Shown: in pieces, positions 1,176-49,231 of the stretch
Position numbering within the stretch: position 1 is the first letter of the stretch
Layout: each line of letters begins with the position of its first letter
IMG/VR virus record: IMGVR_UViG_3300032268_000986
Coordinates: 62,001 to 126,000 of that record
DNA length: 64,000 nucleotides
Direction: 5' to 3' (one strand)
The notes under the pieces: model-generated
The model's database searches: none
The model's input: only the letters and a program-made list of their open reading frames with translations
What the model was told of the DNA's origin: nothing
Translations under genes and position numbers: made by a program

Positions 1176-2219
1176 TCAGAGGTAACTTTCTAGCCCACCG
1201 CGTCGACGAATGTCTTGTGTGCAGCATGAGATGCCACCGTCCCAGAAATAGCTGTGACGCAGTTCTGAGATGATGGGTTCAATGCCGTGTCTGCGACAGT
1301 AGTCAAACACCTGTTTGTTGTAGGCTGAGAAAATCACATGTGATTCGTCCAGCACAAGACAATTGACATCAAACACAGTTTCAGCCACAAAGCCAGTCCA
1401 GTTCTTGAGATAGGTGTTCACAAAGTCAGTGAACTCAGGTGTGGGTGTTTGTCCTTGCACGTACCATGCCCCAGGATTGTTTTCATACTTGAACTTGCCC
1501 ACTTCCATAGCAGCCCAGATTGAACTGTCCCATACCTTGCACACATCCCAGCCCGGGAAGTCGGCAGCAAGGTCCAGATTTACATCATGCTTGCTGCTCA
1601 ACAACACACCGGGTTTTAGGATAGCAAACACAGCATCGCCGTGTCCGTCTGTGATGGCTTCGTGTATGCGATATTCAGCACCCAGCACATTGTCCACGAT
1701 CCAACGTGTTTGATCCGGGCGCAAAAAATCTGAGTTGTCAAAGAACACATCACGACCCACTCGCACAATGCATGATGCCGACGCACCATTTAGGATGCAG
1801 TTCTCATCCCAGCCTGTGGCACCGTGTGGATTGATCACACTGCCCGGCTGTGCTGCTGCATACTCGGCACAGAGTGAATCAAGTTCCTGCATGGGCAACA
1901 CACGCAACAATTTATCGCCCAGTGTGATCTGCCAGTCTCTTGGTGTGAGTGGCGGCAGTGGAGCACCACTGCCGTTTATTTGTCCTTGAATGAATTGATC
2001 ACGATCGGGAAGATCTGGGCGGCGCACCCGAGCACCTGACTGCTCAATGGTGCGTTGCAGGTTGTCCAAGTCTTCGGCAGTTTCGTAAAGAATCTGTTGC
2101 AGTTGATTGCGAACTTGTGGGTTTTCAATAAAGTCAAAATAGTCCGGCGTGTAGGCCTGCCCCACAATGACTTCTTCCAGGGGTTGCCACGATGTGTAGC
2201 TGTTAACAATGTTGCTCAT
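1176..2219 (-). CDS. Amidinotransferase (glycine/inosamine-phosphate amidinotransferase, pentein family)
   Basis: N-terminal VNSYTSWQPLEEVIVG, PRD, GHGD, C-terminal DGGISCCT with catalytic Cys. Confidence 0.85.
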   Translation of the reverse strand: MSNIVNSYTSWQPLEEVIVGQAYTPDYFDFIENPQVRNQLQQILYETAEDLDNLQRTIEQSGARVRRPDLPDRDQFIQGQINGSGAPLPPLTPRDWQITLGDKLLRVLPMQELDSLCAEYAAAQPGSVINPHGATGWDENCILNGASASCIVRVGRDVFFDNSDFLRPDQTRWIVDNVLGAEYRIHEAITDGHGDAVFAILKPGVLLSSKHDVNLDLAADFPGWDVCKVWDSSIWAAMEVGKFKYENNPGAWYVQGQTPTPEFTDFVNTYLKNWTGFVAETVFDVNCLVLDESHVIFSAYNKQVFDYCRRHGIEPIISELRHSYFWDGGISCCTQDIRRRGGLESYL

Positions 2220-16980: not shown

Positions 16981-18264
16981 TTAGTTTTTCTCTTCCTCAT
17001 AGTAGGCGTATTGACCCCAGGGCGGAACAATGGTAGTGGTGCCATGCAAGATCCATACAGTGTCTGCATAATTCTCATCGCCCCACGAACCAAACGGGTA
17101 ACCATCTGTAAACACCACAAGACGCTTGGGCTCAATTTCTTCTGCCTTCAAGTAGTTGTAGATGGCATCAAAGTCTGTACCACCACCGCCCTTGACTTCG
17201 TAGTCGCAGATTGAATCCAAGTTGTCTGAATCATACTGAGCAGGATTGTATGCCTCAGTATCAAACGTGATCACATGAATTCGGTATGCCGGGAACGAGT
17301 CCATGATGCCTTGGATCTCACCCAAGAAGTCCTTGAGCATGGTCTCGCTGATCGAGCCCGAAGCGTCCAAGGCAACTGCAATGTCAATCATGGGATCCAG
17401 TTTCATGCCAGGCATGATGGCATCTTGGTGCCAGCCTTTGCGTCCGGCTCGCATCCAAGTGTAGTCGCTCTTGATGGTGCTCTCCAACTGCATGCGAAGC
17501 AGTTCGCGCCAGTTCATCTTGGGCTCAGTGAGCTCCTCGATCAGTCGCTTGACACCGGCTGGGATATTGCCGGCACCGTCCACTGTGGCCGCAGCCGCCA
17601 GCATGGCTTCTTTGATCTCGTCCTTGATGGCCTGGCGATCAGACTCGCTTAACCGGGGACGGCCTTTGCCACTGCCGTCAACTTCTTCTCCATCTCCATC
17701 ACCGTCGGGGTCACCATTGCCGTCCAGGTGCTCGTCAATCATTTGATCCAGCAATTTGCCAATGTCAATTTTTTCGGCTTTTTCGTACAAGATATCGTAG
17801 ATCTCTTCCGAGCTCATGCCGTCATACTTGGGATCATGCAGGCAAGGCACTGTGGTGATCTTTTCACCCACCTTGTGTTTGATCAAGTCTGCGTTCACAG
17901 CAAAGTCATTGGCAATGTTAAACAGCTGAGGATCACGCTCACCACGACGTCCAAAGTGATCATAAACACAATGCAACACTTCGTGTCCAAACAAGAACTC
18001 AATCTCTTTGGGACGAAGCATCTGAATAAAGCGAGAATTGTAATAGAAATTTCTGCCATCAGTTGCGGCTGTGCCACACCATTCATCGGCATTTATCAGT
18101 TTGAGTCGAGTTGCCAAATTACCAAAGAAGCTGGCACGGAGCAACAGGCCCACACGAGCAGTGATCAGTTTTTCACGTACCTCGCGATCTATCTTGGGAT
18201 CAGTCTTGCCAATGAGATTTTTAAACTTGGCTTTGTCTTCTTTGTTAGCGGTGGTTGCAGTCAT
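16981..18264 (-). CDS. Metallopeptidase-like plus VWA domain protein (DUF2201 type)
   Basis: TAATDG, HEVLH, DASGS MIDAS, GGGGTDF, VFTDG. Confidence 0.9.
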   Translation of the reverse strand: MTATTANKEDKAKFKNLIGKTDPKIDREVREKLITARVGLLLRASFFGNLATRLKLINADEWCGTAATDGRNFYYNSRFIQMLRPKEIEFLFGHEVLHCVYDHFGRRGERDPQLFNIANDFAVNADLIKHKVGEKITTVPCLHDPKYDGMSSEEIYDILYEKAEKIDIGKLLDQMIDEHLDGNGDPDGDGDGEEVDGSGKGRPRLSESDRQAIKDEIKEAMLAAAATVDGAGNIPAGVKRLIEELTEPKMNWRELLRMQLESTIKSDYTWMRAGRKGWHQDAIMPGMKLDPMIDIAVALDASGSISETMLKDFLGEIQGIMDSFPAYRIHVITFDTEAYNPAQYDSDNLDSICDYEVKGGGGTDFDAIYNYLKAEEIEPKRLVVFTDGYPFGSWGDENYADTVWILHGTTTIVPPWGQYAYYEEEKN

Positions 18265-18311
18265 GCGAGTCCTTTGTTTGGTATGTGTATATTATAGCAG
18301 ATTGCAGTTTA

Positions 18312-18554
18312 TCAGTCAATGTCTGCAGAAACCCGGCCTTCCGCAGGGTCATATGTCAGGTAAACCTTGGTACTGTCACGGCCGCCTTGCTCATCGACCT
18401 TGTAGACCACAGTGTAGCAAAATTGTCCACCATTGGTGATGCCCAGGAACCGAGCACCTGTAAACTCCATGTCTTGAGCCTTTTTGTCCAGAGCCCGTTG
18501 CAGGGCCTGGTGTGTGAATGTTGTGAGTGTTTTGAGTTTCTCTGCTGTGATCAT
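18312..18554 (-). CDS. Hypothetical protein
   Basis: SD ggag before MITAEKL. Confidence 0.6.
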   Translation of the reverse strand: MITAEKLKTLTTFTHQALQRALDKKAQDMEFTGARFLGITNGGQFCYTVVYKVDEQGGRDSTKVYLTYDPAEGRVSADID

Positions 18555-18555
18555 A

Positions 18556-18834
18556 TCACATGCTCCAGTAAGTTTCGCTAGCCGGGTTGCAACACCAAGG
18601 TGTGTCTGCGTCAATCTCCACAGACTTGCCCGACATCAAATTCTTCACAGTGATCTTGGGAGCCTGGTAGGTGTCGCGAGCCACAATGTGCAATTGGCTT
18701 TCGTTCCAACCTGCTTTGCGGCAGAGTCGAGTGCGGGTGGCCTGTGCGGCACCCCAAGTTTTGTATGCACGGGTCTTGTTGGGACCGTCTGTAACAATTA
18801 AACCAGTACCTTTTGCAACAATCACATAACTCAT
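18556..18834 (-). CDS. Hypothetical protein
   Basis: SD aaggag and own promoter. Confidence 0.7.
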   Translation of the reverse strand: MSYVIVAKGTGLIVTDGPNKTRAYKTWGAAQATRTRLCRKAGWNESQLHIVARDTYQAPKITVKNLMSGKSVEIDADTPWCCNPASETYWSM

Positions 18835-18864
18835 TTGGGGCTCCTTTTTGCTGTCTATGTGTAT

Positions 18865-18893
18865 ATTATAGCAAAATGGCGAATTTCGGTCAA
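18865..18893 (-). promoter_or_regulatory. Sigma70-type promoter TTGACC-N17-TATAAT
   Basis: ggtcaa 18888-93 and attata 18865-70; same architecture at 21216-44, 21680-708, 21998-22026, 22916-44, 24453-81, 49183-211, 49577-605, 49980-50008. Confidence 0.85.
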
Positions 18894-18929
18894 CCAAAAA
18901 AAGTGTTGTAAAAATGTAACACTTTAGTA

Positions 18930-19214
18930 CTACAAATTCAAGTACTTTAGCTGGAACCAAGACTGTGCTGGTTCACTGTAAAAATCCAGATGAACCTGCT
19001 CTTCGTAGTACATGCTGGGACCATTGGGAGTTGGGGGTTCCGCTGGCACTAGGCCTTTGTGATAGCGATACACAAACCCCAGCTCACGTCGCATGCGTGG
19101 GCGTATGGCCATGCCCATGCCGTAGTCTCGTAGAATCTGAGCATACACATCCGACCACTCTCCAGGCCGGTGAAAAACAATCAAGTTCTTTTTTACGGTG
19201 ATACGGGGTGGCAT
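18930..19214 (-). CDS. Hypothetical protein
   Basis: ORF in co-directional run. Confidence 0.6.
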   Translation of the reverse strand: MPPRITVKKNLIVFHRPGEWSDVYAQILRDYGMGMAIRPRMRRELGFVYRYHKGLVPAEPPTPNGPSMYYEEQVHLDFYSEPAQSWFQLKYLNL

Positions 19215-19522
19215 AGTACAAACCAACTCAGTGTTTTGTCTTCGTCTATATAGATACGATAGTCGCCGTACTTGACAGCATACGCCCAGGTGGAATTGAT
19301 GTCGTCCTCTTGATAGTCCTCTTGATTGCGAATTTTGTTGCGCATCATTTGATAACGAGTCTCAACATCTTGGCTCCACCCAAATTGCTGGTTGAACCAA
19401 CGCCGGCAACGATCAAAGTCCAACACGCCAGTGCCATGACCATGGTCTTTGTTGAACTCCACAAGGTACCGGTAACCATGCCGAGTGTACCGGTTGTCCA
19501 TCTTGGTAATTTTATATTTCAT
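19193..19522 (-). CDS. Hypothetical protein
   Basis: ORF in co-directional run. Confidence 0.65.
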   Translation of the reverse strand: MKYKITKMDNRYTRHGYRYLVEFNKDHGHGTGVLDFDRCRRWFNQQFGWSQDVETRYQMMRNKIRNQEDYQEDDINSTWAYAVKYGDYRIYIDEDKTLSWFVLCHPVSP

Positions 19523-19592
19523 ATGATGTCAAGTAGAAAAGGGCTGTGTAGCACACAGCCCGTGTATTTGATCTACACAGCCCTTCCCTGAC

Positions 19593-20675
19593 TTAGGCCG
19601 AAGCCTGCAAGATGTACTTGCCAAAGCGCGAGTGGAACTCGTCAAAGTTCTTGAGCTTGGTGGGCAGGAAGGGCAAGTCGTATGTGGTCAATGCAATACG
19701 AGCACCCATCACTGTCAACTCAGTCTCAAAGTTCTTCATCATGTAGCCCAGGAAGTTGTCGGCCATTTCATGGAACTTCTTGTCTTCCACTTTGTTTTCA
19801 ACTGCACTCTTGAGCTCATAGCACATGGAGATCACCAGGCTGTACATGGCCGACACTTCTTTGACCTGCAAGTCCTTGACCTTGCCTGCCAAGATGTCTG
19901 CAGGATTGGGCATGCGGCTTGCAACCTTGCGGTGAGCCATGAACTTCACTGCCAAGCCTTCACCAATTGTGCCTGCAATCAAGTTGGTCAGGGTATCGTT
20001 GTCGCCGTCGTCATCCAACAGCTGGCTCACAAAGGTCCATGAGCGCGGTGTAGCAAACGAACGCGAGCTAGACTTGGAATCAAAGTCATACAAGTCTTGC
20101 TTGGCAAAACTCAGGTAACCCACCACGTCTTTGTGGATGCGGTTTTGCACTGCCCACTCTTGCCAAGATGCAAAGTCCACCTTCATCTCTTGGTGGATAA
20201 AGCGGTTGGCCAACGGAGTCGGCATGCGATATGTAACACCTTTGTCGCTTTCACGGTTGCCTGCGGCAACCATCACAACATTGTCGGGCAAGAAATACTT
20301 GCCAATGCGTCGATTCAAAATCAACTGATAAGCCGCACTCTGCACACTCGGAGCAGCCGAGTTCATCTCGTCCAAGAACAGCACCACAATAGGATACTGG
20401 CTGGCAGTTTCTGCATCGGGCAAGTCCACTGGAGCCGCCCAGTCCATTTTACCCGAGTCTTTGTTGTAGAAAGGAATACCACGAATGTCTGTGGGCTCCA
20501 TCTGACCCAGGCGCAGATCATACATGATGCCGCCAAGATCTCGAGTGATGCCTTCCACCAGCTCACTCTTGCCAATTCCGGGAGGACCCCACAGGAACAA
20601 AGGACGCTTGACTTGGAATGCTTTGAGCAGGGATTTTTTTGCTTGAACAGCGGTAACGGTGCGTGTATCTGACAT
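19593..20675 (-). CDS. MoxR-family AAA+ ATPase
   Basis: Walker A GPPGIGKS, Walker B LFLDEMN, AAGN, LANRF, ATPRSW. Confidence 0.92.
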   Translation of the reverse strand: MSDTRTVTAVQAKKSLLKAFQVKRPLFLWGPPGIGKSELVEGITRDLGGIMYDLRLGQMEPTDIRGIPFYNKDSGKMDWAAPVDLPDAETASQYPIVVLFLDEMNSAAPSVQSAAYQLILNRRIGKYFLPDNVVMVAAGNRESDKGVTYRMPTPLANRFIHQEMKVDFASWQEWAVQNRIHKDVVGYLSFAKQDLYDFDSKSSSRSFATPRSWTFVSQLLDDDGDNDTLTNLIAGTIGEGLAVKFMAHRKVASRMPNPADILAGKVKDLQVKEVSAMYSLVISMCYELKSAVENKVEDKKFHEMADNFLGYMMKNFETELTVMGARIALTTYDLPFLPTKLKNFDEFHSRFGKYILQASA

Positions 20676-21656: not shown

Positions 21657-21714
21657 TAAAATCTCCTTGTTGCTGTTTAATTATAGCAAATTGGGAATTC
21701 CTGGTCAACCAAAA

Positions 21715-21966: not shown

Positions 21967-22036
21967 CTGGGGCTCCTTTGTTGCTGTCTATGTGTATATT
22001 ATAGCAAATTGGGCATTTCTGGTCAACCAGTAAAAA

Positions 22037-22054
22037 TGTTGTATTTTTACAACA
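22037..22054. promoter_or_regulatory. Palindromic operator-like site TGTTGTA-N4-TACAACA
   Basis: Related copies at 18904-21, 49224-41, 49647-64, each upstream of a -35 box. Confidence 0.6.
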
Positions 22055-22061
22055 TTAATAC

Positions 22062-22262
22062 TCAAGTAGTACGATAAAATTCTACTTTGTTGCGCAGGGA
22101 TTCAATCTCGTCGGCGGCCTCTTCCAAAAGATCACTGATGCGATCTCGGGCGCCCTCTTGCACACTTTTTCTGTCTTGATTTTGCCTGCGTATTTCGGCA
22201 CGTTTTCGTAGACGGAACACCAGACTTTGTTCGCTGACCGGCAGGTGTGATTCGTCGTTCAT
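22062..22262 (-). CDS. Hypothetical protein
   Basis: ORF with RLRKRAEIRRQ...DLLEEAADEIE. Confidence 0.65.
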   Translation of the reverse strand: MNDESHLPVSEQSLVFRLRKRAEIRRQNQDRKSVQEGARDRISDLLEEAADEIESLRNKVEFYRTT

Positions 22263-22383
22263 TGTTTTACCTTTTGCAGATCTACTAGGTGATATCTGCT
22301 GAAGGGATAATTTTCATTAAGCCACTCCAGCAGATCTGGTTCCCAAGGAAATTGTATGCTACCATCATGGTTGGTAATAATAA

Positions 22384-22893
22384 TCATGATTTCACACGAG
22401 TGATAACACTGGCATGCTGCCACAACACACGATCACCACGGGTCATTACTTCCAACAACAATCTCTTTTCTTCCAAGTATGTGCGAGCAAACTTTGCGTC
22501 ATGCTCAACAATGCTTCTAGTGTTAGAGATCAAATCAGCCAACTTGACGGTCTGAGCCTCAGCCGGTGCTGCCGCTGTATGAGCACGATCAATGGCCTTG
22601 CGTGTGGTACGATTGCCTTGTTCAGGCCTTGACACATCGGTCAACCATCCCACCAATTCAGCAACCTTGTCACCAAATTCAGCACGAATTACTTCGTTGG
22701 TGACACCAGTGTCTTCGACTACATCATGCAACCAGGCCGCTGCCAACATCTCGGGAGTGTGATCCACTGTTGCAACAATGCCAGCAACTTCACGAGGGTG
22801 AACGATGTAAGGCTCCATGGTGTACTTGCGCAATTGAGCCACGGCCGAATGAGCCGCAGTGGCAAATATTCTAGCACGTTCAACTATTTCCAT
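22384..22893 (-). CDS. HD-domain small alarmone hydrolase (Mesh1/SpoT-hydrolase-like)
   Basis: H..Q.RKY...PYIVHP, LHDVVEDT, VKLAD.ISN. Confidence 0.85.
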   Translation of the reverse strand: MEIVERARIFATAAHSAVAQLRKYTMEPYIVHPREVAGIVATVDHTPEMLAAAWLHDVVEDTGVTNEVIRAEFGDKVAELVGWLTDVSRPEQGNRTTRKAIDRAHTAAAPAEAQTVKLADLISNTRSIVEHDAKFARTYLEEKRLLLEVMTRGDRVLWQHASVITRVKS

Positions 22894-22940
22894 GATATCT
22901 CCTTAACAATGCTGTATTATAGCACATGAGCGAATTTCGG

Positions 22941-23402
22941 TCAAGCGTACCAGATTTCACTAAACCCTTCCTCGTGTGTGGGCATTTCAAAGTTCCATAC
23001 CATGTCCCACAGCACAGCTTCGGGGATGACTTTGCCCGGCCGAGTCTTTAGTCTACGCTGATGTTCCTCTTCGTCTGGAGTCTGAAACACCACAGCAATG
23101 TGCTCATAGTCCGGCAACATGCGGAATTTACGCCTGCGGCTAGCAAAACTAGTTGACGTTTGATCCCAGATAATATCATGCCCGTGATTGCGAGCATGTA
23201 CAACAACCTTGGACATTAGGTCCACTGCTGTGGGCATGTATTCTTCAAACACTTCTGAATAAGTTTTGCCTTGAGCTCTAGCATAGTCTTCCACAAATGA
23301 ATCTGTGCTGACCACAGTCAGTCCCAGAGCCCAGATTTGATTCTGGACCCAGGTACTCTTGCCCGATGCCGGAACTCCAATCAGTTGATAACATCTAGGC
23401 AT
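22941..23402 (-). CDS. P-loop kinase (polynucleotide-kinase-like, AAA_33)
   Basis: GVPASGKST, VVSTD, IIWDQT, RRR, PxxEEGF. Confidence 0.82.
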   Translation of the reverse strand: MPRCYQLIGVPASGKSTWVQNQIWALGLTVVSTDSFVEDYARAQGKTYSEVFEEYMPTAVDLMSKVVVHARNHGHDIIWDQTSTSFASRRRKFRMLPDYEHIAVVFQTPDEEEHQRRLKTRPGKVIPEAVLWDMVWNFEMPTHEEGFSEIWYA

Positions 23403-23411
23403 ACACTCTCC

Positions 23412-23957
23412 TCAATAGTGAGATCGAATCTCACCCTTTAATGCATCTGCAATCAATCGGTCCATGTCACTGGCCACACATCCTGTGGCATCAAATGCCA
23501 CATCTCTAGCACGATATTTTTCCAGGCCAGTTTTGTTGCCATGCACATGACCATAGAAGTGTACTGATCCACGATGCATTTGGTCCCATTCCCAGATGGG
23601 ATAGTGAAACATTATCACCAACTGACCATTGTGAACATAACGCAGATACTGATGTGTTTCACGAAAACATTCCCGGAATTTTTGATCCTTGATCAGCTTG
23701 GCATCATGATTACCTTCAATCAAAATCTTGTCACCATTGAGTCGTTGCAGTATTGACACTGCTCGTTCCGCGTTACAAAATGCAACATCACCAAGAATAA
23801 ACGTTTGATCACCAGGATGCACAATCTGATTCCATTCTTGAATCAAACATTCATTCATGTGATCTACATCTCGAAACCCAGCACGAGTCACAGGACAAAA
23901 CTTCATGATGTTGGTGTGTCCAAAATGTAGATCACTTGTGATATAGGTCTTCATCAT
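23412..23957 (-). CDS. Calcineurin-like metallophosphoesterase
   Basis: SDLHFGH, LGD, GNHD, HYP, GHVH. Confidence 0.9.
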   Translation of the reverse strand: MMKTYITSDLHFGHTNIMKFCPVTRAGFRDVDHMNECLIQEWNQIVHPGDQTFILGDVAFCNAERAVSILQRLNGDKILIEGNHDAKLIKDQKFRECFRETHQYLRYVHNGQLVIMFHYPIWEWDQMHRGSVHFYGHVHGNKTGLEKYRARDVAFDATGCVASDMDRLIADALKGEIRSHY

Positions 23958-23964
23958 TTCCTTT

Positions 23965-24432
23965 TTAATAATTGTTTTTAAATGTGCGCCAATCATCAAT
24001 GTTGGGCTTTTCTTGTTCGTCGTATGTCCAACCCAGGGCCTTCATCATGCTATGCTTGACCATCAAGTTTGGACTACGAAAACGCTTGGTATCATCAAAG
24101 CCCATCATGACACCAACCTCGGTCACTGCACCCGACCGGCAAATACCTGCCATGCAATGCACGACCACGTTCATGCGATTGTCTAGCGCATGTTTTAACA
24201 AACTAACAATCTCCTGAGCCTGTGCATCACTGATCTTGGCATCGTCGGGAAAGATGTCAGACTTTTCGGCATCAAGAAATTCAAACCGATGTGTTTCTTT
24301 GAAGTCATGGGCTGGAGTGGGCCACCAACTGGGTGCAGGATCCATGATCTGAATCAGCATGCTATTCGCACCAGCATCGTGATGGAACTTCATGGGCACA
24401 TCAGCGGCGGCTACGTTTTCAATCCAGGGCAT
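23965..24432 (-). CDS. Dual-specificity/tyrosine phosphatase-like protein
   Basis: HCMAGICRS (HCX5R). Confidence 0.85.
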   Translation of the reverse strand: MPWIENVAAADVPMKFHHDAGANSMLIQIMDPAPSWWPTPAHDFKETHRFEFLDAEKSDIFPDDAKISDAQAQEIVSLLKHALDNRMNVVVHCMAGICRSGAVTEVGVMMGFDDTKRFRSPNLMVKHSMMKALGWTYDEQEKPNIDDWRTFKNNY

Positions 24433-24477
24433 AAAATTCTCCTCAATGTTGTATTATAACACAAAGGAGATTTTTGG

Positions 24478-25266
24478 TCAAGTGTCTTTGTGATGATTAG
24501 AGTGTGTGACCAGCCATGCTCGTAACCCGTCAACTGAGTTGAGTTCACGATTCATCTGGTGCCAGTTCTCTAGTACTTTTGTTTGGCCAGTGGTGGCCCA
24601 CTCGGCTACTCCAGCAAGACCAGTTTCGTTGCCCCGACGAATGCCATAGTTGAAGTGCAAACTCTCGCGAGCAAATCCCGGCGGCACCATTCGAGTCTTG
24701 TGCAGTTTACGATAACGATTGTCGTTGATGTAACCCCAGTTTCTACGGAACGGCACAGTGTAGTATTCATTGTCGTCAACTGCCACTGGCAGCGAGTTAC
24801 CCTGCTCGTCAAACCCTTCATTCACAGTGCTGTTGATCTCTTCTTCCAGCACAAACTGTGTGCCCAATTCTGGCATGTCAACATCTGACAGATAAACCTG
24901 AACATTCATGGCCCACTCGGCAGCGTCAAAGTGCGGGTAAAAGTTAGCCCCGCTGAGATCAAGATAACCGCGGCATGTGGCCAAACTCAACCGCTCACCA
25001 GTGAGTTCTTCCAGATAAGGGATCAAGGCAGATCCAAACAGTATAGCATCCAGCCAGTGGTTGTTTTCCATCACAAGACGGTTTGGATACCGGCTGCTCC
25101 ACAGGCTTTCAGTTCTACGAAAATTGTTCTTGATTCTGGTCAACCACTCGTCGTTTAGGAAGTTTTCCAACTGCCACAGGGTGGGGCAAACTGATCGCTT
25201 GTTGTCCCAGTTGAACATGGTGTTCTCTGGATAAGTTAAATTTGGGGGATAAATGGGTTCTGACAT
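24478..25266 (-). CDS. Putative 2OG-Fe(II) oxygenase
   Basis: PHFD (HxD), QVYL, distal H and R. Confidence 0.6.
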   Translation of the reverse strand: MSEPIYPPNLTYPENTMFNWDNKRSVCPTLWQLENFLNDEWLTRIKNNFRRTESLWSSRYPNRLVMENNHWLDAILFGSALIPYLEELTGERLSLATCRGYLDLSGANFYPHFDAAEWAMNVQVYLSDVDMPELGTQFVLEEEINSTVNEGFDEQGNSLPVAVDDNEYYTVPFRRNWGYINDNRYRKLHKTRMVPPGFARESLHFNYGIRRGNETGLAGVAEWATTGQTKVLENWHQMNRELNSVDGLRAWLVTHSNHHKDT

Positions 25267-25270
25267 GTGC

Positions 25271-25522
25271 TTATTTACGATAGGTGCGACGACGTGGTGC
25301 CGGCTCTACCACTTTGGTAAGGTACTCGTTGCCAACTTTGCCTTGCTCAATTTCCAACAATGCAGTGAGAATGGGACCATGCTTGGAAGTGACTCGGGGC
25401 ATGTCTCCACGAGACAGTTCTCGAATTCGATTGCTGGCAATCAGCACCAGATTGTATCGATTGCCCACCATGGCCACTGCGTCTTCACTGGTGAGACCAA
25501 GAGTTTGAATGTTAGAGTTCAT
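25271..25522 (-). CDS. rpoZ: RNA polymerase omega subunit homologue
   Basis: EDAVAMVGNRYNLVLIASNRIREL...TALLEIEQGK aligns by eye with omega [22 protein letters not shown]...IALREIEEG. Confidence 0.85.
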   Translation of the reverse strand: MNSNIQTLGLTSEDAVAMVGNRYNLVLIASNRIRELSRGDMPRVTSKHGPILTALLEIEQGKVGNEYLTKVVEPAPRRRTYRK

Positions 25523-25608
25523 GTATGTCCTTGTGAGTTACAAAGTATTTATTATACACAACTTGTTGATTAAACACAACCTCAGTTGCCCCGTTTATAA
25601 GTACTGTC

Positions 25609-26094
25609 ATGCCCATGCTACGTTTCTATATCGAATACCATTGGGGGCGACGTCGCCCAAATTTGGAATTTTACATGAACAACCAACAGCTATCCCCGCA
25701 ACTGATCTGGTGTGATCGTGTGCTGCCTCATCAAGAAAACATCATACTTGAAACCACGTGCGAATTGGCAAAGCACAATCAATTGCAGGTGGTCATGCGG
25801 GACAAGACTGATCATGATCTAGTGTTTGAAGATTCTGGCATGATTGATCACTGGGCCAAGATACAGGAAGTTGAAATTGATGGCATTCTGGCACAGACGG
25901 CATTGTACTTTTGTTCCAACTTTCGTCATGCCATGAGCAGTGATTGGGTGGAACACATGCGTCAACAAGGGCACACAATTGAACCAGTGTATGCCGGGGG
26001 AACTGACATTAGACTCAATGGCGCATGGACCATGAATTTTAGCACCCCGGTATGGGAGTGGTATGTTAACAACTATGAACAAACTAACAGCTGA
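25609..26094 (+). CDS. Hypothetical protein
   Basis: TAAGTA 5 nt before ATG. Confidence 0.65.
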   Translation: MPMLRFYIEYHWGRRRPNLEFYMNNQQLSPQLIWCDRVLPHQENIILETTCELAKHNQLQVVMRDKTDHDLVFEDSGMIDHWAKIQEVEIDGILAQTALYFCSNFRHAMSSDWVEHMRQQGHTIEPVYAGGTDIRLNGAWTMNFSTPVWEWYVNNYEQTNS

Positions 26095-26797
26095 TTTTTT
26101 TGCCGCCGAGTTTCCTAGATATCAAGTGCCGGGCACTTATGAAAATGCCGTTGCAACTTTTTGGCAAAACACCAAGATACCCTTTGTCGAACTTGACCTT
26201 GACCTGGACATGGACTCCACATACCAATGGTGTGTCAACAACTCAGATAATTTTGATCTAGCATGGAACCAAAGAAAATGGAATCAACACAATCAACACC
26301 AGGGTTCTACATGGTTCAAACGACCACACAGTGAACACCGGTATGATTTAGAAATTCAAGGAAAACGTTTTGCCAGTAAAGTTGACTCGGCTACCAATCT
26401 CACTAGAATTGCCAGGCCCGATGGCGCAACTGATTTGCAAATTCAATTGAAAAAATTAGGAATTGAATATTCTTCTCTCAAACTGGCTAGATTGGATCCA
26501 GGTGGGTACCTTGAACCCCACAAGGACGCATTTCAAGACCCTGACTGTTTGTCTCATGTATGGATTCCCATACACAGCTCTGAGGCCGAGTTAAAAATTT
26601 ATCCCTGGGGCAAACTGCCACATCGCGTGGGATGTGTATATTTGCTGAACAATCAATCTTTTATTCACAGCATTGTCAACACATCTACTCAACCAAGATT
26701 TGTTGCCACCATGCGCTTGATTGTAGACACTGTGCCTGAAAGTATTTGGAACTTGATAAAGCATCAAGTTCAACATCAATGGTTTGACCATGGTTAA
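26075..26797 (+). CDS. Aspartyl/asparaginyl beta-hydroxylase-like 2OG-Fe(II) oxygenase
   Basis: LARLDPGGYLEPHKD, HSIVN...PR. Confidence 0.75.
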   Translation: MNKLTADFFAAEFPRYQVPGTYENAVATFWQNTKIPFVELDLDLDMDSTYQWCVNNSDNFDLAWNQRKWNQHNQHQGSTWFKRPHSEHRYDLEIQGKRFASKVDSATNLTRIARPDGATDLQIQLKKLGIEYSSLKLARLDPGGYLEPHKDAFQDPDCLSHVWIPIHSSEAELKIYPWGKLPHRVGCVYLLNNQSFIHSIVNTSTQPRFVATMRLIVDTVPESIWNLIKHQVQHQWFDHG

Positions 26798-27303
26798 CTG
26801 TTGAGAACCTTGGCCACTGAATTCATAACACTGGCGATACGTCCAATGTCACGAAGTTGTTCCACTGTGTATCCTTCTGAGTTCTTTAGTGTGTCATAGT
26901 GTGCCTTCACACAGAAATGACATTTGCCAACAATACTTGCTGCCAAACTAAATGCTTCAAAGTTGGCCTTGGTAGTTCCGCCATGTGACGCAATAGCGTT
27001 CATGCGCAACTGTGCTGGCAATCCTTTCAATGCAGGATCTTCAGCCATCTCAACATAGGGATACCAAACATTGTTCTGTGCCATAATTGAAGCGGCTGTC
27101 ATTGCAGATTCTGAATGCACTGGAGCATCTGCCAACAGCACTGCAAGTACCCGGCCGTTGCCGGTTGCAGCCAACGCGGCCACAGCACAGCCCATGGCCA
27201 CATCTGCATCCAGTGTGCTACGTAATAACACAGCATCAAGATTTAACTTGGTGTCCTTGGCATAGTCAGGCAGTGCGCCCTTGATTGATTCAATAAAACT
27301 CAT
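26794..27303 (-). CDS. ahpD: Alkylhydroperoxidase AhpD
   Basis: LPDYAKD, MAQNNVWY, CHFCVKAH. Confidence 0.92.
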   Translation of the reverse strand: MSFIESIKGALPDYAKDTKLNLDAVLLRSTLDADVAMGCAVAALAATGNGRVLAVLLADAPVHSESAMTAASIMAQNNVWYPYVEMAEDPALKGLPAQLRMNAIASHGGTTKANFEAFSLAASIVGKCHFCVKAHYDTLKNSEGYTVEQLRDIGRIASVMNSVAKVLNS

Positions 27304-34000: not shown

Positions 34001-34089
34001 TGGAGGAAGGCTAGTAGAATCGAACTCTATGCGCTTTCGCACACCTTCTGTTTTCAAGACAGAGTCAGGCCCAGCCTGATTAACCTTCC
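34001..34089 (-). tRNA. tRNA-Ser(TGA), atypical fold
   Basis: TCTGT-CTTGAAA-ACAGA, long variable arm, 5-bp D stem, U73. Confidence 0.75.
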
Positions 34090-34531: not shown

Positions 34532-34560
34532 ATTATACAGCCGACAATCGCAGTTGTCAA
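34532..34560 (-). promoter_or_regulatory. Consensus sigma70 promoter TTGACA-N17-TATAAT inside tRNA array
   Basis: Perfect hexamers and 17-nt spacer; the same at 35497-35525 and 47247-47275. Confidence 0.85.
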
Positions 34561-42998: not shown

Positions 42999-43070
42999 TG
43001 TTTTTCCTTATAAAAGTAAGGGCTTTTGACCCTGAGCAATTATATATGCAACTGCATGTTGCAGTCAAGA

Positions 43071-43097
43071 AGAAAGGTCAGATTAACTGACCTTTCT
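43071..43097 (-). terminator. Hairpin at the end of the tmRNA coding piece
   Basis: AGAAAGGTCAG/CTGACCTTTCT. Confidence 0.6.
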
Positions 43098-43500
43098 GGT
43101 GGTTTCTGTTACGAGGTATTTCCTACCCTAAGCAGTGTTTAGGCTGCTAATGCGAACTGTGAGTCGTTTGCGTTTACTTTTTTGCTTGATTAACGGTCAT
43201 CGCCTACCGTGCTGTCCACTCTGTTACTTGTTGCCCTGTCGAAACTATGCAGGCCCATCATAAAGAAACTTCTTCAAATCTAGATGCCAAAAGCACAATA
43301 CGCAAACCGGCATCTGTTTGAATTACTACTCCATTACCCATGGTATAGACAATATCATAGTCTTTGCCAATTGTTAGTTCCTTATGCACAGCTTTAACAT
43401 CAGGTAATGATTTAAGTATCATAAACTTCCTTATGGTGGACCTGGGGGGATTCGCACCCCCGTCCAGAACACTGTTCTCATCACTTCATACAGCAATAAC
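43098..43500 (-). ncRNA. ssrA: Circularly permuted (two-piece) tmRNA, tag ANDSQFALAA
   Basis: Acceptor piece ending CAGGTCCACCA (43434) precedes 5' piece GGGCCTG...TTTCGAC (starts 43256); G3:U70; tag frame 43139-43171; outer ends approximate. Confidence 0.92.
43258..43422 (-). CDS. 54-aa ORF inside the tmRNA intervening segment
   Basis: SD AAGGA; MILKSLPDVKAVHKELTIGKDYDIVYTMGNGVVIQTDAGLRIVLLASRFEEVSL. Confidence 0.6.
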   Translation of the reverse strand: MILKSLPDVKAVHKELTIGKDYDIVYTMGNGVVIQTDAGLRIVLLASRFEEVSL

Positions 43501-43502
43501 TT

Positions 43503-43661
43503 TTAGATCTGCACCACGGTCCATTTGGTTGTAAATGGTTTGCCTTCGGCCTTGTGTTTCAGTATCTTCGCAAACTCTTTTTCACGGAGTTTGGCAATGG
43601 TTTCTGTATCGTGGTCGAAGCAAGCCTTGTACAAACGAGAAACCAATTTCTTTTGTTTCAT
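43503..43661 (-). CDS. 52-aa basic hypothetical protein
   Basis: SD aaggagg; [14 protein letters not shown]... Confidence 0.6.
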
Positions 43662-49152: not shown

Positions 49153-49231
49153 TTGTGGCTCCTTGTTGCTTACTATACTCATATTATAACAAATTGGCCT
49201 TTATTGGTCAACCAAGAACGCAGTGTTGCAT

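Follow-up and report, generated by a model that had tools for sequence, protein, structure and literature searches.

The stretch of DNA analysed here, called the window throughout, comprises 64,000 nucleotides of the IMG/VR virus record IMGVR_UViG_3300032268_000986 (bases 62001-126000). The record is a 342,865-bp jumbo phage judged 99% complete, and the window is best explained as the early-gene region of this 343-kb genome. On its minus strand lie a gene for a variant omega subunit (RpoZ) of RNA polymerase (RNAP) and, 2,378 bp away on the same strand with four genes between, a gene for an HD-domain alarmone hydrolase. An earlier note, made from the sequence alone, had joined the two into a possible two-part evasion of the stringent response, the bacterial programme signalled by ppGpp (guanosine tetraphosphate). 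Profile matches confirm both genes at the positions and the 2.4-kb spacing that it gave. The gene identities, the intact catalytic motifs and the unusual omega N-terminus have held up, while the pairing of the two genes and its proposed purpose at tRNA promoters have not. The features at the centre of the argument are the following.

25271-25522, minus strand: phage omega (RpoZ/Rpb6 homologue), 83 amino acids (aa), supported by Pfam, NCBIfam and PDB profile matches and by structural models

25579-25551, minus strand: weaker candidate omega promoter, TTGTGT-17-TATAAT, read from the sequence

22384-22893, minus strand: stand-alone small alarmone hydrolase (SAH; HD_4, PaSpo-like), 169 aa, matched by Pfam HD_4 and phrog_990

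The omega protein scores 43.4 bits against Pfam RNA_pol_Rpb6 (PF01192; E 3.5e-11, cut-off 26) and 31.7 bits against the NCBIfam rpoZ equivalog TIGR00690 (cut-off 23.6), and the profile of its family matches E. coli omega in the PDB at 5e-16. By these profile matches it is a true RpoZ/Rpb6 homologue. AlphaFold2 places helices at residues 13-19, 22-38 and 49-59 with a mean predicted local distance difference test score (pLDDT) of 80, leaving both ends floppy and of low confidence. Much like enterobacterial RpoZ, the phage protein has a three-helix core carrying the GNR[FY]xLVL...RxRE and ALxEIExG motifs; identity to Salmonella omega is 29% across the MAFFT alignment and ~40% over the core aligned by tblastn. 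Unlike bacterial RpoZ, it is virus-encoded, its gene lies outside a gmk-rpoZ-spoT operon, it has a 6-residue extension and TLGL where bacterial omega has MAR (Met-Ala-Arg), and a short basic PRRR tail (PAPRRRTYRK in the window protein) replaces the long acidic one.

The N-terminus is where the phage protein departs from the residues that line ppGpp site 1 of the polymerase. The observation that it lacks MAR and carries an extension was reproduced by two alignments, the PDB profile alignment and MAFFT against Salmonella omega, in which phage L8-G9-L10-T11 pairs with E. coli A2-R3-V4-T5. Residues 1-7 precede L8, six of them extending past the position of E. coli M1, and the window omega is thus not of the MAR type, which has Met-Ala-Arg without extension and places residues 2-5 in site 1. 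An AAGGA ribosome-binding site 5 nt before the start codon (25532-25528, minus strand) supports the assigned start. Since the neighbouring plus-strand gene is divergent, omega must begin its own transcript in the 25523-25579 region; the candidate promoter there is missing from the promoter scan list, its -35 hexamer matching at 3/6 positions only. For this gene the ratio of nonsynonymous to synonymous substitution rates (dN/dS) is 0.13-0.25, which indicates purifying selection.

Relatives of this omega were sought among viruses, cultured phages and cellular genomes. At least 455 contigs in IMG/VR encode one, many of them 100-367 kb long, and a word search recovered 32 relatives, all metagenomic. 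PHROGs contains no family for it. Among cultured phages, tblastn returned eight weak hits, and no recognisable phage omega was behind any of them. Two of these, filed as phage, were inspected and rejected as bacterial contigs: a Salmonella contig (L086, AFYI01000003.1) and the 240-kb 'Acinetobacter phage MD-2021a' (L087, CAKLQH020000003.1) are both bacterial sequence with a chromosomal gmk-rpoZ-spoT operon, in which rpoZ stands directly upstream of an HD_4-bearing spoT. The remaining six share the same 39.7% enterobacterial-type match and come from bacterial assemblies or unannotated records. Among 185,579 bacterial and archaeal species, one genome each, the family motif was found in three contigs only, all from metagenome-assembled genomes (MAGs) that encode a different, native omega elsewhere; the scan pattern is specific to the viral family and cannot tell which bacterial omega is closest. 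One of the MAGs, assigned to Haliscomenobacter, carries a MAR-type member of the viral family (L091, G007:C1:130532-133669; 77 aa, open reading frame (ORF) 1438-1671, minus strand) on a contig of at least 132 kb as well as a T[AL]GL-type omega on contig 90, and the former contig could be a further binned phage contig or a prophage. The literature yielded no report describing a phage-encoded omega, and the jumbo-phage RNA polymerases reviewed so far are without omega (PMC7598289). The phage omega is a virus-restricted, widespread and previously undescribed family.

Synteny and linkage were counted over 80 related omega loci, and N-terminal types over the 63 distinct proteins drawn from these loci, the three MAG contigs and the window. 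The position of R3 is occupied by Gly in 48 of the 63, inside a conserved T[AL]GL[TS][SN]E after a variable extension of 6-18 residues, and 37 of these 48 end in a PRRR-like tail. Arg3 is kept in 12 proteins (MARITSE and similar) with 0-4 extra residues, apart from one that reads 9 and probably has an over-called start, and Gln stands there in the other three. AAGGA-type ribosome-binding sites precede the extended start codons in most loci. A short basic C-terminal tail is present in every viral omega, MAR types included, unlike the long acidic tail of enterobacterial omega. We built a quick maximum-likelihood tree from the omega core, omitting the R3 position and using a bacterial outgroup. 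Many forks are unresolved, but Gly-type omegas form supported clades of 41 and 6 and MAR types fall in an unresolved basal zone closer to the outgroup. Judged by this tree and the conserved motif, MAR was lost in a large phage lineage and the derived state has been conserved there; the window genome is no accidental case.

To place the phage omega on a polymerase, its complex with E. coli beta' residues 340-940 and 1135-1407 was predicted. The model has an ipSAE interface score of 0.78, against 0.00 for the best control; the ipSAE mark is reached by 51 of 78 solved complexes and by 2 of 108 mismatched pairs. Contacts agree between runs at 84% or more, with a partner pLDDT of at least 73. The modelled omega contacts beta' at 474-488, 905-913 and 1360-1364, which is the canonical omega site used by bacterial RpoZ, and its residues 7 and 9-16 touch beta' 364, 418 and 613-619, beside the site-1 residues R362, R417, K615 and I619 (PMC7676912, PMC10191844). 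The phage omega is therefore predicted to sit on the omega site of beta' with its N-terminus at the site-1 pocket.

What a change at this pocket might do is suggested by work on the E. coli enzyme. Omega without residues 2-5 loses site-1 binding, with a dissociation constant above 100 uM (PMC7676912), so a remodelled omega N-terminus could affect site 1. The stringent response at initiation can do without site 1, which governs elongation, backtracking and transcription-coupled repair; stringent control rests with site 2, which requires DksA (PMC10191844). A site-1 effect of the phage omega would thus alter elongation, not promoter activity, which undercuts the proposal that desensitisation through omega keeps tRNA promoters active.

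The polymerase on which this omega would act appears to be that of the host. In the whole phage genome we found no match to RNAP beta or beta' (PF00562, PF00623), no sigma70 region 2, no extracytoplasmic function (ECF) sigma factor and no DksA/TraR. No DxDGD motif in a beta'-like context was present among ORFs of at least 60 aa; the regular-expression matches were rejected, as they lay within the MoxR-type ATPase, short ORFs or stretches that are acidic or rich in Gly/Asp. Perfect TTGAC-N17-19-TATAAT sites number 18 in the window, where 0.12 are expected by chance, and every one is on the minus strand. They belong to a family of near-identical TTGACC-A/T-rich spacer-TGnTATAAT promoters between 16627 and 50008 (for example 21680-21708, 21998-22026, 22916-22944, 24453-24481 and 49183-49211), many sharing the spacer CCAATTTGCTATAAT and the discriminator ATACACAT, and they look like the early-promoter set of the phage. 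Consensus promoters directly precede the hydrolase, the phosphatase, three tRNA clusters and the transfer-messenger RNA (tmRNA), so the region is read as transcribed by the host sigma70 holoenzyme. Two of them lie between omega and the hydrolase.

24453-24481, minus strand: consensus sigma70-type promoter TTGACC-17-TATAAT with TG before the -10, before the phosphatase gene

22916-22944, minus strand: consensus sigma70-type promoter of the hydrolase gene, 22 nt before its start codon

The phage tRNA promoters, at 34560, 35525 and 47275, combine consensus hexamers and 17-bp spacers with AT-rich discriminators (1-3 G/C in the 8 bases past the -10). By what is generally known of promoters, this class forms stable open complexes and is expected not to be inhibited by ppGpp/DksA. 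From their make-up, these promoters seem inherently unresponsive to ppGpp and would need no rescue.

The hydrolase is the better-known half of the locus. It scores 63 bits against Pfam HD_4 (E 3e-17, cut-off 27), also matches phrog_990, and retains all catalytic residues (R22, H32, H56-D57, E60-D61, D120 and N124) when set against the Rel domains 8acu, 5xnx and 6yxa. It had been described as Mesh1-like. With Mesh1, the metazoan SAH, it does share the HD_4 fold family and the catalytic residues; it is nevertheless closer to bacterial Rel/SpoT, scoring ~60 bits against the hydrolase domains of long Rel/SpoT proteins and 34-38 bits against Mesh1, and to other phage SAHs (up to 57% identity), so that the label is a loose one. 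A role as an NADPH phosphatase, as in Mesh1, is unsupported for the window protein. It has homologues in 237 records of cultured phages. The Salmonella phage SSU5 SAH, PaSpo, a member of the RelA/SpoT homologue (RSH) superfamily, is likewise a phage-encoded, stand-alone, single HD_4 domain of similar size with the motifs kept, and is 47.8% identical over 92% of the length; the PaSpo assignment rests on this pairwise similarity, not on the subfamily models of Jimmy et al. SSU5 PaSpo neutralised all five toxic small alarmone synthetases (toxSAS) tested (Jimmy et al. 2020, PMC7229694), and it strips the 3'-pyrophosphate that FaRel2 places on tRNA (bioRxiv 10.1101/2024.07.05.602228). Because the whole phage genome contains no RelA_SpoT synthetase domain (PF04607), the window hydrolase is stand-alone and not a toxSAS antitoxin, and the genes adjoining it encode a kinase and phosphatases and not a toxSAS. 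It is an ordinary member of a well-known kind. From its 48% identity to PaSpo we infer that it acts on the 3'-pyrophosphate of (p)ppGpp, (p)ppApp or pyrophosphorylated tRNA (tRNA-PP).

Taken together, these observations suggest the following course of events. A phage without recognisable RNAP or sigma factor would drive this region from host-type sigma70 promoters. The PaSpo-type hydrolase, made from its own consensus promoter, would remove the 3'-pyrophosphate of (p)ppGpp, (p)ppApp and toxSAS-modified tRNA ends, and its action would blunt alarmone-based growth arrest and defence. The phage omega, keeping the beta'-binding core of proteobacterial omega, would take the omega site of host RNAP and set its extension and T[AL]GL at the site-1 pocket, with a short basic tail instead of the acidic tail of the host. 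Omega-dependent properties of the host polymerase would change as a result, the first candidate being the site-1 response to ppGpp, namely slower elongation, pausing and backtracking. We give roughly even chances to the reading in which the phage omega sits at the omega position of host RNAP and alters the omega-dependent behaviour of that enzyme, with the hydrolase as a second, independent takeover gene. An altered site 1, and hence elongation relieved from ppGpp, is the leading specific possibility for omega and is put forward tentatively. It is possible, if doubtful, that a jumbo-phage clade replaces a host RNAP subunit outright, its omega displacing or pre-empting the host omega and removing or blocking site 1 while the basic tail adds a function. 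The analysis itself establishes what the two genes are and that their motifs are conserved, how the omega family is distributed, that purifying selection acts on it, that the two genes are not linked, and how the promoters are laid out; binding to beta' in vivo, displacement of the host omega, loss of ppGpp binding and the hydrolase substrates are all steps that we infer.

Several points weigh against host RNAP being altered in this way. The omega-beta' complex has already been solved, so that the score of the model may reflect memory and speaks for likeness, not proof, and E. coli beta' is only a proxy for the host of this phage. The host omega already sits on beta', from which the phage protein would presumably have to displace it. 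In a high-resolution structure, the 3'-diphosphate of ppGpp contacts omega A2, R3 and V4 by main chain and not by side chains (PMC10191844), so a change of R3 to G need not abolish ppGpp binding. Because 12 of the 63 viral omegas retain MAR, loss of the ppGpp site cannot have been the original reason for phages to carry an omega. Desensitisation at site 1 would also be partly redundant if the hydrolase already removes ppGpp. Finally, very divergent phage RNAP subunits could evade Pfam models.

This last point leads to the idea that omega serves a highly divergent multisubunit RNAP encoded by the phage itself. Jumbo phages do encode very divergent beta/beta' fragments, which Pfam may miss (PMC7598289), but the known jumbo-phage enzymes are without omega, as noted above, and the region uses host-type promoters. 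The genome also gives neither a large-subunit profile match nor a beta'-like DxDGD, and the omega core resembles the enterobacterial one closely enough to dock, in the model, on E. coli beta'. We regard this origin as very improbable. The same low standing goes to the view that omega is a host-derived gene that is carried passively and does nothing during infection. E. coli can live without omega (cited in PMC7676912), but passive carriage sits poorly with a presence on at least 455 viral contigs, fixed synteny, purifying selection and lineage-specific conserved motifs, and outside viruses the family appears only on the three MAG contigs, in genomes that have a native omega of their own. That hydrolase and variant omega act as one stringent-response evasion system, keeping phage tRNA promoters active under ppGpp, has more to draw on. 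Both genes lie 2.4 kb apart in one early same-strand block, the omega lacks MAR, 33 tRNA genes and a tmRNA follow downstream, and the gammaproteobacterial arrangement of rpoZ directly upstream of spoT offers a cellular echo of the pairing. However, in only 12 of the 80 loci is an HD_4 gene found no more than 10 kb from omega, and five omega-bearing relatives, 286-367 kb long and in four cases 92% complete or more, lack one altogether. The gene stands beside 8 of 48 MAR-less omegas and 3 of 12 MAR types, which shows no association. The tRNA promoters, moreover, are of a class expected to withstand ppGpp/DksA. Hydrolase and omega are independent modules, not a conserved pair, and a joint system of this design seems to us improbable.

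The main rival starts from the same independence and gives each gene another task. Here the hydrolase would be a counter-defence against toxSAS of the CapRel, FaRel or PhRel type, restoring 3'-pyrophosphorylated tRNA and destroying (pp)pApp. The main job of omega would be independent of ppGpp: it would stabilise or fill omega-free RNAP, shift sigma competition or act as a tether through its basic tail, the N-terminus being secondary. The performance of the SSU5 homologue (48% identity) against five of five toxSAS toxins and its removal of the tRNA modification speak for this, as do the heavy investment of the phage in tRNA and the position of the hydrolase beside a polynucleotide kinase (PNK)-like kinase and a phosphoesterase, a hint of RNA-end repair. 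The basic tail is common to all viral omegas; because MAR and MAR-less types share it, this rival makes it the better candidate for the primary function of omega. Against it, the scan of flanking ORFs revealed no RNA ligase and that of the genome no toxSAS gene, and the strong conservation of T[AL]GL in a large clade points to selection for a function at the site-1 pocket. We consider this explanation unlikely as a whole, if well short of negligible, and keep as our preferred reading the occupation of the host omega site together with an independent hydrolase.

Phages redirect host RNAP by means of sigma factors, anti-sigma factors, covalent modification and small binding proteins. Large eukaryotic DNA viruses encode Rpb6 homologues, which serve multisubunit RNAPs of their own, unlike the situation in the window phage, which has no recognisable large RNAP subunits. 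Phage T7 Gp8 inhibits RelA/SpoT (bioRxiv 10.64898/2026.01.27.700999). Gp8, phage sigma and anti-sigma factors and gp39 share with the present case the aim of making host transcription serve the phage, under alarmones or by redirection of RNAP. They are, however, add-on binders or inhibitors, whereas the phage omega is a homologue of a core subunit, implying subunit replacement. We found no described precedent in bacteriophages for a phage-encoded core RNAP subunit; if subunit replacement is true, this would be the first bacteriophage to supply a variant core subunit of the host enzyme, and a natural experiment on the purpose of site 1. What omega and ppGpp site 1 do in the cell is a matter of continuing debate, and the MAR-type and MAR-less variants on one scaffold provide a ready-made pair for studying how the omega N-terminus bears on ppGpp binding, on pausing and on the yield of phage from starved cells. 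Omega, a widespread phage-encoded variant of a core RNAP subunit, is the interesting half of the locus; the hydrolase adds little that is new and confirms alarmone chemistry as a target of the phage.

The four genes between hydrolase and omega, and others close by, are as follows.

24478-25266, minus strand: 262-aa protein directly downstream of omega, with no Pfam, PHROG or NCBIfam match

23965-24432, minus strand: Cys-based phosphatase (HCxxGxxRS) of the protein tyrosine or dual-specificity type (PTP/DSP-like); Pfam Tc-R-P and DSPc, phrog_5614, weak DSP matches in the PDB

23412-23999, minus strand: metallophosphoesterase (phrog_547)

22941-23402, minus strand: AAA_33 P-loop kinase (Pfam AAA_33, 7e-20; phrog_6931, phrog_505)

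within 25609-27303, plus strand: divergent pair of a 161-aa protein and a 244-aa protein weakly resembling an Asp/Arg hydroxylase

26794-27303, minus strand: CMD/AhpD-like gene, found upstream of omega in 33/80 loci

16981-20675, minus strand: MoxR-type AAA ATPase (phrog_1297) and its 427-aa partner (phrog_1314)

43048-43538, minus strand: permuted tmRNA (two-piece, alpha-type) with the tag ANDSQFALAA and its own consensus promoter at 43039-43068

The neighbours of omega differ in how well they are conserved. The metallophosphoesterase accompanies it in 58 of the 80 loci, the PTP-like phosphatase, which frequently adjoins omega directly, in 48, the MoxR ATPase in 35 and the CMD-family protein in 33; the 262-aa protein occurs in just three, those of the closest relatives. 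The AAA_33 enzyme has a weak likeness to polynucleotide kinase (weak TIGR04075). Together with the metallophosphoesterase and the Cys-phosphatase it forms a trio of phosphoryl-transfer genes (22941-24432, minus strand) that is kept beside omega across the clade; a role in RNA-end repair or in (de)phosphorylation of RNAP is conceivable for it.

ARAGORN finds 32 tRNA genes in the window, and Rfam adds one tRNA-Ser, making 33. The latter had been called by Rfam as a tRNA-Sec (34005-34089, minus strand; 48 bits, cut-off 47), a call that we rejected, as the anticodon UGA makes it an unusual tRNA-Ser(UGA) that ARAGORN missed. At the nucleotide level (megablast), 22000-26000 matched no cultured phage. 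The MoxR-type ATPase is a useful marker for placing the phage: it is 79-100% identical within the clade and ~50% identical to its counterpart in Pseudomonas phage PA5oct. By this marker the nearest cultured kin are PA5oct (50%), Sinorhizobium phage Phosso and Atu_ph07. Hints to the host conflict, among them the alpha-type permuted tmRNA, these MoxR kin and the enterobacterial-like omega core. Outside the window, the phage genome also contains an uninterrupted ORF of 4,790 aa on the plus strand (G000:C1:27414-41786).

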